Below, in pieces: positions 2,740-22,693 of a stretch of 64,000 nt of DNA. Within the stretch, counting starts at the first letter, position 1. Every line of letters begins with the position of its first letter. The position numbers were made by a program, and so were the translations under genes. The notes beneath the pieces were generated by a model. That model did not search any database. It was not told where the DNA came from and saw only the letters and a program-made list of their open reading frames with translations. Source of the DNA: Dimorphilus gyrociliatus (taxonomy: Eukaryota > Animalia > Annelida); the NCBI GenBank assembly GCA_904063045.1, contig CAJFCJ010000019.1, positions 1,751,700 to 1,815,699 on the forward strand, written 5' to 3'.

Positions 2740-3575
2740 ATTCAACGCTTATGTGGTAATTTGATTTAAATATTTATGAATAGAGTGAAATATCTATAAT
2801 TAAAAGAAAGCCATGTCATAGGACATAGAAGGTCAATTTTCCAAAAACGTTCACATTTTAGATTACATAAGAGTATAAATTATGATTAATTTTAAAAGCT
2901 GTCTTCCGTATCCCATTTCGTTTATCATAATACTTAACATTAGATTTTACAGTTATAGACTCTACGACTATAGTTATCTTATTAGCAGAAGTTTTCGAAG
3001 TTATATTCCGTAAGCAAATATTTGATAGTTTCCTTAGGCTTGGTAAAGGATTGTCAAGTTTTCTATGATATTTTAATATGTATAATATCCTAACTATTCT
3101 ATTTACAAATATAAATGACAACTAGTTCTTTAGCATTATACTATAAATAGCCGTTTAGATAAACAATTATTAAGAGAAAGTGGATTATATTTATGGAATT
3201 GGTTAGATAATTGCCTGGAATTAAATATAGTAAAAAGAAGGAATATATCTCTATGTTATGTATACTTTTATCGTAAATATAGAATAGAATCGTTATACAA
3301 ATTTACAGTGCAAACAGTAGATATCCTCTGTAGAAAATGCTGGAAATTATACTATTCAAAAAGATGTTGAGATGATATAAACATCATAAATGCGAGTCTG
3401 TTATTCTAGAATATTATTATTGACAGATAGACTTGTAATTGTGGATTGCCACTCAATTTTTTTCAATCATTCGTTAATTAATGATAACACGTGCAAGTAT
3501 CTATTAAGATTACTTTTAAAATCGTAACCAATATCCTTTGTACTATTTTCAACGAAAAAGAGGAGAAAAGTTTCA

Positions 3576-3613
3576 TGCGCATGCGTATCGTAAATCTTGT
3601 GTTAGGGCGGGAA
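3576..3613. promoter_or_regulatory. Second NRF1-like + E2F-like module
   Basis: TGCGCATGCG 3576-3585 and GGCGGGAA 3606-3613, with almost the same spacing as the 2701 module. Confidence 0.45.
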
Positions 3614-4299
3614 GTGTAATTTTGTCAAATATGATAAAAAATAACAGCTAACTATGCTGTTGGATTAGTTAAATATATCTAAAATTTTAAAATCCCAATT
3701 AAAATAATAATATATAACTTCAATACGAAAACCATTATAAACCATCGCCTATCGAATTAGACTAGTGGTAATTTAGTCACTTTTGATATATTAAAGAACA
3801 ATTTTTAGGGTGATGGTTTTTAAAAAATTTTAAATATTAATTTAAGCTTGCTCTATATAACTATATGGAGAAGAATATATAAACAACGAGCTCTCAACTA
3901 TTACTCTATAAACTTAAACGATTAAAGTTTCAATCAAAAAGTCAATACTTTATATTAGTATATACAGTATATACAAATATATTAATCTTTTTTTTAAAAG
4001 AAGACAGAAAATGTAAATTTTTATTATTTTAGAAAATTTACATTTTCCGTTTGGAGTTCAAGCTACTAGAAAAAATTTTTAGATATTTGTTTCAAATAAG
4101 CGCAACTATAAAATTGAAATTAATTTTCATATCAGTCCACAATTATATGCGGAGCTATCATTTAAGTCAGCAATGGTAGGGAACCAGCCTTTAATGCAGA
4201 CGACACGAATTGAAAGAATATAGGGAAAATAAGCGCTCTGACAACAGGGCCAGAAATTGGAGGGAATTGACATTATCTAGTTATAAAATTGTATAAAAA

Positions 4300-20183: not shown

Positions 20184-22693
20184 TTATTTGCCATCAGCAA
20201 CAGCTTGAAGAAATTCAACAACGGTTCTCGTTGGTCTACCGGCCATTCCTTTAGTTAAATACGAAACTTCGCCTTTGTTAGACATGACACCAGCAATATC
20301 CATATGCATCCATTGATCATGCTCAACGAATTCCTAAAAATTAAAACAGATTTATTTTATACAGCATGCATTAAAAAAATTGGTTAAAAGGCGACCAAAA
20401 TGGCAAGTGAAATTGACCTTAAGGAAAGCGGCAGCTAAACAAGAGCCACCACCTTTAACACCAGTTGAGATAGTGCTGTTCAATAAGTCAGCCAATTGAC
20501 TGTCTCTCATTGTTTCTGTATAACATTTCCACAACGGCATTCTCCAGACGCGGTCTCCCGTTTGTTTACCCGCCTAAAAATGTTAAAATTAAATTCAAGT
20601 GTCTTATTTTCCAATAGTTAACGGTGACTATGCAGGTAAATCAACGGGGTTCCTTGCCATTTTGAACGACTTTTACCTTTATGATCGGAAAAAGTTGTTT
20701 AATTGCTTTTAACCTTCAAAAATGCAGCTGCCGTGCATGAACCAGCGTTACGGCCAGCTGATCCAATATTGTTTATGTCAGCTAATTGGCAGTCATTTAT
20801 TTGCTTTTTGTAGAGATTGAATAATGGCATACGCCAAACTCTATCTCCCGTTGATTTCCCAGCCTACCATGAATAAGGATTAAGGAGTAAAAAGTGAAAA
20901 ATGAAGCCTGTCTAAGATAGAGTGATCAAAGCTTACCTCATGCATTCTGGTCCATAGTTTATCAGAATTTGTAAACACACCTGCAGCCCCAGCACCCAAA
21001 GCAACCATCATCGCGCCAGTTAAAGTAGCCATATCGATAATTGCCTTTGGTTTAAAGGTCTGAGCATAACATAGGGCATCAGCAAGGACAAGACGCCCTT
21101 CGGCATCTGTATTATCAACTTGAATAGTTTTACCATTCATAGCTGTTACAACATCACCAGGTTTGGTTGCAGATCCCGAAGGCAAGTTTTCACAACAGGG
21201 AGTGAAAACTCTCAAGTTTATAGGGATTTCTAATCTAGCAGCTGCATATGCGCTTGCCAAAACGCATGCTGCACCTCCCATATCAGCTCTCATGGCGTCC
21301 ATGTTCGCAGGAGGTTTCAAGGAAATACCACCGGCATCAAAAGTAATACCCTTTCCGACAAGTGCAATGCATTGATCTCCCTCATTACCGCCTTTGTATT
21401 CAATTTCGACGAATTTTGGAGGTTCAACTGATCCATTGGTAACGCTCAAGTAACTTCCCATTTTATGACTTTCAGCCCATTCCCGATCGTGAACTTGTAC
21501 TTTAACATTCTTCAATTTTCCGATGTGTTCTTTTACCAATTCTCCTATTCTGGTTGGGGTCATTACATTTGCCGGAGTTTCCATCAAGCGACGAGCAAAG
21601 TTTTGAGCTTCAGCCAAAACGGTACCTCTCTTCCAATGACTACAGCTGTTTTCAAGGTAGCATCTTACTTTTGGAGCAGGCTTCTTCTCCGCTTTCAATT
21701 CATCGTAAACATATCTAGTTAAAGTTGAAAGGGGAAAAATACGCGATAGTGAAAAAACTCCTATTAAATATACAGTATATATAAAAACTAACGTGCAAAG
21801 AGTAGCTGCTTCAGCAGCGGCTTGAGCATTCGAGCACGGATCAACTAGAAAAAATCAGTATTAAACAATCACATTACTAAGTAGGTTGAAAAAAATAGTG
21901 AACCTTGAATGTCGTTGAAACCGGCTTCGTTTAGAGATCGAACACCTGTAGCAATGGCTGCTCTAATGTTCTCCTTGCTCTCGTCAACTTCTTCGAGAGG
22001 ATTGTAGCCAGCTCCCTTTTTTCCCAATGAAACAACAGCAATTGCTGGATAATTTTCATGGAGGCCATAGAAAACACGGCTTTTTCCTTTCTTAGAGGCC
22101 AAATTAGATCTTTAAAAAAAATATTGTATAAAAACACCTTTAAACAGCAATGGACTTACTGTTTAACCAGGTTAAGCAATTTCGAAGAAGTTTTATCGTT
22201 TACTTCCTTTGCTGCATCAGTTAAAGGAATTTCATTTTCGGAAGTAGGCTCATAAATACCCAAAACTAATCCTCTCTGTATTGAAAAGAAATGACTAATA
22301 ACCAGAATGTTAGTGTAATAGTGCCACCTTTCGTTTCATATAACAATTGAACATGGTTAAAGCGATGAATACTGTTATAAGTACGTGTCAGCACTACATT
22401 TGTTGAGGAAACTACTACCTCCTAGAATTTGAACACTTGTCCATAGTACAATTATCAATTCGGATAAAGGAACATATCAGTCGACTAAAGATAGGACTAT
22501 CATGAGTCTGCACACGACACATGCAACAACCAAGTTAGTTGTTCTTCAGTTTTATCCGAATGATAACTTGTACAGGACACGTAAGAAAAAACTGACACAT
22601 ATTACTTACGTTAGAAGTCATAGCTACTGAATAGGTTGCGAATGTTCTCGTCAATCTGAAAACCGGGACTAATCGAAAACCGATAAATACCAT
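20184..22693 (-). CDS. LAP3: Cytosol/mitochondrial leucine aminopeptidase (M17) with a duplicated penultimate exon
   Basis: [59 protein letters not shown]; all metal ligands present. Confidence 0.97.
20418..20573 (-). other. LAP3: LAP3 alternative exon B (duplicate, 156 nt, phase 0-0)
   Basis: [52 protein letters not shown], flanked by AG/GT, no stops. Confidence 0.85.
20714..20863 (-). other. LAP3: LAP3 alternative exon A (canonical, 150 nt, phase 0-0)
   Basis: [50 protein letters not shown], flanked by AG/GT. Confidence 0.9.

Follow-up and report, generated by a model that had tools for sequence, protein, structure and literature searches.

A leucyl aminopeptidase gene of the M17 family and LAP3 type, encoded on the minus strand of a 64,000-nucleotide stretch of DNA (the window), very probably contains a tandem pair of duplicated, mutually exclusive exons, through which two isoforms share one catalytic centre and differ in a nearly invariant loop, likely in the S1' pocket, with the choice between the exons likely made by RNA pairing. 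Leucyl aminopeptidases of the M17 family perform housekeeping functions, are conserved, and include drug targets such as the Plasmodium M17 enzyme. Tandem mutually exclusive exons are a well-known class of mechanism, and the point of interest here is the swapping of a near-invariant active-site loop in a housekeeping peptidase.

Gene structure and the duplicated exon

The gene has seven exons, rebuilt by combining the sequence with RNA junctions, the RNA evidence being assembled contigs of four runs (X1, X3, X4 and X5) from four studies that were aligned to it. All features of the gene given below lie on the minus strand. Exon 1 (22610-22693) carries the start ATG at 22693 and was placed by sequence and by the junction 22275/22610, which is present in contigs of X1 and X4. 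It is followed by exon 2 (22160-22275), exon 3 (21904-22109) with the M17 N-terminal domain, exon 4 (21793-21844) and exon 5 (20937-21714), whose 778 nucleotides, with 259 full codons, encode most of the M17 catalytic domain and are common to both isoforms. After an intron of 73 nucleotides (20864-20936, GT..AG) comes exon 6A (20714-20863; 150 nucleotides, 50 codons), the canonical version with LADINNIG...SCTAAAFLK, and behind an intron of 140 nucleotides (20574-20713), which holds two adjacent candidate pairing arms, exon 6B (20418-20573; 156 nucleotides, 52 codons), the divergent version. An 84-nucleotide intron (20334-20417) leads from there to exon 7 (20184-20333), again common to both isoforms, with 49 codons and the stop TAA. 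The protein is 511 residues long with 6A and 513 residues long with 6B.

Exons 5, 6 and 7 are consecutive stretches of the profile PF00883, whose curated cut-off was passed: exon 5 covers positions 1-222 (316 bits, E 2.7e-94), 6A and 6B both cover positions 224-270 (45.9 and 39.3 bits), and exon 7 covers positions 271-310 (27.7 bits). The peptide of exon 3 scores 25.7 bits against PF02789, the M17 N-terminal domain, where the cut-off is 23.4. The first exon encodes a basic and hydrophobic leader of 24 residues, followed by a second Met; it could act as a mitochondrial presequence, with an internal start for a cytosolic form. Upstream of exon 2 the contig of the relative sequenced in run X5 diverges from the window.

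With introns of 50-334 nucleotides and a G+C content of about 32% in the window, this is an AT-rich invertebrate gene and not a vertebrate one; a gene as compact as this, and RNA that comes from marine and aquarium metatranscriptomes, fit Dimorphilus gyrociliatus. The original prediction had compared the arrangement to vertebrate LAP3, for which nothing similar was known to it. The vertebrate LAP proteins that were sampled do possess a single canonical segment where the gene described here has two versions, but the vertebrate framing itself does not apply to an invertebrate gene. The region of exon 5, one exon here, is interrupted by several introns in Ostrea, in Paralvinella and in the contigs L001 and L010, which suggests that the lineage has lost introns of the catalytic domain and kept the boundaries of exon 6.

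The peptides of 6A and 6B are identical at 30 of 52 positions (58%) in BLASTP, with E = 2e-20 for the single comparison. Both exons are stop-free, in phase 0-0, and furnished each with an AG acceptor and a GT donor. At the nucleotide level they are only about 60% identical and their flanks are unrelated, which indicates that the duplication is old; a tblastn search of the 64-kb window detected 6A and 6B and no third copy of exon 6. Adjacent, homologous, of the same phase and of similar length, and with splice sites of their own, the two exons have the appearance of a mutually exclusive cluster. The original prediction had been made from the letters of the sequence, and its description holds: exon A with 50 residues and exon B with 52 lie where it had placed them, they translate as it had quoted (the 14-residue stretch of B included), and translation, BLASTP and the splice sites confirm the shared motif, the phase 0-0, the lack of stops and the distance of 140 nucleotides.

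What the exchange alters in the enzyme

Exon 5 aligns to residues 128-388 of bovine lens LAP (1LAM), exon 6 to residues 389-437 (with the start at 389 or 391), and exon 7 to residues 438-480, including Ala451 and Met454 of the S1 pocket (DIAGVM). Conserved in exon 5 are Lys250, Asp255, Lys262, Met270, Asp273, Asn330, Asp332, Ala333, Glu334 and Arg336, as well as Thr359, Leu360 and Gly362 of the T359-G362 stretch. The ligands of the two metals (Lys250, Asp255, Asp273, Asp332 and Glu334 in bovine numbering) and the catalytic Lys262 and Arg336 are all in this exon, so that the earlier claim that the metal ligands belong to the shared upstream exon is borne out; the alignment of 6A to the bovine enzyme places the Ile of the motif NNIG at residue 421, and it is therefore indeed Ile421 that resides in the swapped exon, as had been proposed.

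In the work of Burley and colleagues of 1991/1992, Ile421 reportedly lines the S1' cleft together with Asn330 and Ala333. It is also found among the inhibitor-contact residues along with the residues of exons 5 and 7 listed above (PMC7180978), and of these known contacts it is the only one that exon 6 supplies. The isoforms are identical except for the stretch equal to residues 389-437 of the bovine enzyme, and by alignment they take both the catalytic centre and the S1 pocket from shared exons. With bovine lens LAP and vertebrate LAP3 (1LAM, 1BLL) the protein has in common the domain layout, the metal, catalytic and S1 residues and, in 6A, the segment LAD-x-NNIG...CTAAAFLK.

The motifs LAD-x-NNIG and CTAAAFL are almost invariant in about 45 animal sequences, and 6A keeps both of them. 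In the corresponding ten-residue loop of 6B an Asn is replaced by Leu, the residues ST are inserted before the Ile, which is itself retained, and the Gly is replaced by Ser, resulting in LLNSTIS with its two-residue insertion; further on, CTAAAF has become CLAAAF. Given the near-invariance of NNIG and CTAAAFL, 6B alters strongly conserved positions, and its type of loop occurs in none of the solved M17 structures that were matched. Since Ile421 is in the swapped exon and the catalytic residues are in exon 5, a changed prime-side pocket is plausible, and it would be reasonable to suggest that the gene likely makes two peptidases of the same chemistry with a differently shaped prime-side (S1') pocket. 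Mixed hexamers of the two isoforms, which the original prediction had named as an alternative, would be a further possibility.

Exon 6 adds about 48 other residues, however, and the effect of the swap could lie elsewhere than at Ile421; as far as the alignments can tell, effects on assembly or regulation would be equally possible. We give a minor, though by no means negligible, probability to an explanation by which both isoforms exist but their difference serves to tune assembly or stability of the hexamer, regulation, binding of partners or a moonlighting role of B. This would agree with Ile421 being the one listed ligand contact among the approximately 50 residues of exon 6, and with the conservation of this Ile in 6B, whose changes surround it or affect the CTAAAF segment. 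It is less easily reconciled with the position of the largest changes (N to L, the ST insertion and G to S), which flank Ile421 within the near-invariant loop, as may be expected of an element lining a pocket. We favour the change of the prime-side pocket, and a pair of proteins with a single differing segment may serve as a natural experiment on the part of this loop in prime-side recognition.

Expression and constraint of exon 6B

All 12 sampled words of exon 6B are present in run X1, which is a coral metatranscriptome. As a rough measure, the depth of the contigs with A and with B was 12.5 and 6.4 in X1, 28.9 and 22 in X5, and 7495 and 6854 in X4, respectively, and with depths so comparable 6B does not appear to be a minor form. 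A second, strongly altered version of a near-invariant loop is kept here in a swappable exon and expressed near the level of the canonical one.

The relative in X5 expresses both 6A and 6B, and from the window it differs at 6 of 151 positions in exon A (4.0%) and at 7 of 157 in exon B (4.5%), compared to 130 of 1297 in the other exons (10.0%). The Fisher test against the other exons yields p 0.012 for A and p 0.021 for B, and p 0.0008 when the two are pooled. Five of the changes in exon B are listed: four of them affect a third codon position, and the fifth results in Asp24Asn. In comparison with this single relative 6B is under no less constraint than the constitutive exons. Low silent-site change is a known pattern of alternative exons, which the X5 data fit. 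Both versions of the exon are kept under selection, on the evidence of X5 as the single relative, and the decay of exon B in relatives, which the original prediction itself had named as an argument against it, was not seen there, since X5 keeps 6B and expresses it.

Exon 6 is single, and has the same boundaries, in the annelids Paralvinella, Capitella and Owenia, in the oyster Ostrea and in the nemertean Lineus; it is also single in the contig L005 and, again with the same boundaries, in the contigs L009-L011. The outcome of the search for exon B in related genomes, which had been recommended along with the prediction, is thus divided between the X5 relative with both exons and five spiralian genomes with a single exon 6.

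One could also imagine that the inclusion of 6B is splicing noise, or that 6B is a decaying duplicate and isoform B has no selected function. Such an explanation would be in line with the five spiralian genomes that manage with a single exon 6 and with the scores of 6B, which are below those of 6A both in the match to bovine LAP (37.8 vs 64.1 bits) and in the Pfam profile. We regard it as improbable, because 6B is intact and in phase and reaches, in three studies, a depth similar to that of A, because X5 maintains it at about 4.5% divergence against about 10% in the rest of the gene, mostly through third positions among the listed changes, and because the nucleotide identity of about 60% between A and B makes 6B an old duplicate that is nevertheless undecayed.

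Mutually exclusive use in RNA

The junction of exon 5 with 6A (20863/20937) is present in contigs of X1, X3 and X5, and the junction of 6A with exon 7, by which 6B is skipped, in contigs of all four runs. For 6B, the junction with exon 5, by which 6A is skipped, is present in X1 and X5, and in X4 there are loose ends of 12 letters which agree with the end of exon 5; the junction of 6B with exon 7 (20418/20333) is present in X1, X4 and X5. Neither a junction between 6A and 6B nor one between exons 5 and 7 is listed in the RNA contigs of the four runs, and in none of these contigs is the 140-nucleotide intron between 6A and 6B spliced out. In X1 and X5 the exons 6A and 6B appear as two short contigs, each with 26-29 nucleotides of exon 5 and of exon 7, a bubble such as alternative exons would be expected to produce. 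Each mature mRNA carries either 6A or 6B. The mutually exclusive use claimed in the original prediction is therefore what the contigs of four studies display, and the comparison of junctions proposed there has found the A-only and the B-only forms and, at the level of contigs, no A+B form. Contigs drop rare variants and give no exact isoform ratios, which leaves room for transcripts with both exons or with neither at a low level.

One contig of X4, at 20306-20445, is unspliced through the 84-nucleotide intron between 6B and exon 7 and has a depth of about 99, compared to about 6850 for the spliced form (approximately 1%); it represents low-level intron retention or pre-mRNA. Since X4 reveals a form of about 1%, co-inclusion at the percent level should have been visible as well.

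That transcripts normally include both 6A and 6B or lack both, and that the exclusivity of the two exons is an artefact of assembly, is extremely improbable, for even though both exons are multiples of three, so that transcripts with both or with neither of them would remain in frame and evade nonsense-mediated decay, and even though contigs can drop variants, the junctions which this demands are unlisted in four runs, one of them with depth in the thousands, the contigs of A and of B each run straight into both flanking constitutive exons, and joint inclusion of two exons that cover the same PF00883 positions would duplicate a structural segment.

Two contigs of X1 run for about 255 nucleotides into sequence unlike the window, one at the end of exon 5 (20937) and one in the 3' UTR (20045). 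These extensions could be chimeric contigs, the sequence of another organism, or an unrecognised alternative junction.

How the choice between the exons may be enforced

As the lengths of both exons, 150 and 156 nucleotides, are multiples of three, the reading frame cannot enforce exclusivity, and with a spacer of 140 nucleotides in a gene that splices introns of 50 nucleotides there is no steric enforcement through intron length. All splice sites are GT-AG, and the U12 type is excluded by sequence. The donors of the alternative exons (GTTAAA, GTCAAT) are weak compared to the donor GTAAGC of exon 5.

According to the predicted folds, exclusivity would most likely rest on RNA pairing. Within the intron that separates 6A from 6B, a candidate pairing arm (20653-20675) is complementary to a partner arm in the intron between 6B and exon 7 (20385-20407) over 23 nucleotides, of which 87% are complementary. 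The predicted energy of their duplex is -33.3 kcal/mol, compared to a mean of -20.9 for shuffled sequences (z -3.2), and the stem is present both in the MFE and in the centroid fold of the intron that extends from the donor of 6A to exon 7 (z -3.63). Formation of this candidate stem would loop out exon 6B.

A second candidate element in the same intron (20629-20648) is complementary to the acceptor of 6A together with the first 17 nucleotides of this exon (20847-20866), with 85% complementarity over 20 nucleotides. This pairing is present in one fold (z -1.81), and in the duplex test it was not above shuffled controls. In the fold of the intron from the donor of 6A to exon 7 the same element pairs with the first 17 nucleotides of 6B (20557-20573). 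We propose that the element, which adjoins the loop-out arm, may mask the acceptor of either 6A or 6B.

Competing RNA pairing, of the type with docking site and selector, controls the mutually exclusive exons of insect Dscam1 exon 6 and of 14-3-3zeta. In those systems, as in the gene described here, intronic arms are complementary to sequence that flanks or overlaps the alternative exons, and each pairing would hide one of them; here the pairings are predicted only. With neither frame nor intron length to explain exclusivity, the locus of about 660 nucleotides would make a compact test bed for the control of exon choice by RNA structure.

Relation to known systems

Exons 9 and 10 of PKM, the A and C forms of ketohexokinase and IIIb and IIIc of FGFR2 resemble the present pair in that neighbouring homologous exons, equal in phase and nearly equal in length, are used one per transcript, and also in that the swapped segment adjoins a functional site and the core of the protein is shared. 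The gene described here differs from them in its family, M17, and in that neither a frame shift with subsequent decay nor an intron that is too short explains exclusivity. Full-text literature searches returned no report of a gene for an M17 peptidase or a leucine aminopeptidase with mutually exclusive exons, and the genome paper on Dimorphilus gyrociliatus does not mention mutually exclusive exons. The pair adds an active-site case of either/or exons in a compact genome.

Among 365 collected proteins there were no gene models with two copies of exon 6 except fusions of tandem genes, and Cyprideis, considered as a candidate for an exon-6 alternative, was such a fused tandem gene. The best full-length proteins of the W type, considered as possible B isoforms, are products of paralogous genes or differ as isoforms at the N-terminus, and the isoforms X1-X3 of Tubulanus polymorphus all have the same exon-6 segment. 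An exhaustive HMMER protein search with exon 6B produced only four matches below 1e-10, none of them near-identical, and a metagenome scan with the same exon returned only relatives that are distant and for the most part bacterial, without another pair among them.

A second exon pair and the origin of the loop

A tandem pair of exon 6 is, on the other hand, present in contig L001 (GCA_022702875.1, JAKGBN010086771.1) at 3433-3772, with AG and GT sites at both exons. It begins with a B-like exon of 52 codons (3433-3588), which reads LADLNNSTINT, and continues, after 34 nucleotides bounded by GT..AG, with a canonical-like exon of 50 codons. As in the window, it is the same exon of the same gene that has been duplicated, and the B-like exon shares with 6B the two-residue insertion and the pattern N-S-T-I-x-T; unlike in the window, the B-like exon precedes the canonical-like one and the spacer measures 34 rather than 140 nucleotides. 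A spacer as short as this would by itself forbid co-inclusion.

In a tree of exon-6 peptides (50 columns) a clade that unites A and B has p-AU 0.053, and a clade of 6B with the B-like exon of L001 is not rejected (p 0.37), so the tree would be compatible with a shared as well as with an independent origin of the two pairs. We may even suggest, as a speculation that is more probably wrong than right, that the B-type loop with its two-residue insertion and N-S-T-I-x-T is an old alternative M17 loop, shared with the distant animal lineage of L001 or arisen there anew; its swapping would then be a recurrent route to two prime-side specificities, the choice being made by a two-state RNA switch on one intronic element.

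The canonical loop has neither an N-S-T sequon nor a stretch rich in Ser and Thr, both of which are present in the B-type loops of the window (20472-20480, residues 32-34 of 6B) and of L001 (within 3433-3588); the enzyme is presumably cytosolic or mitochondrial.
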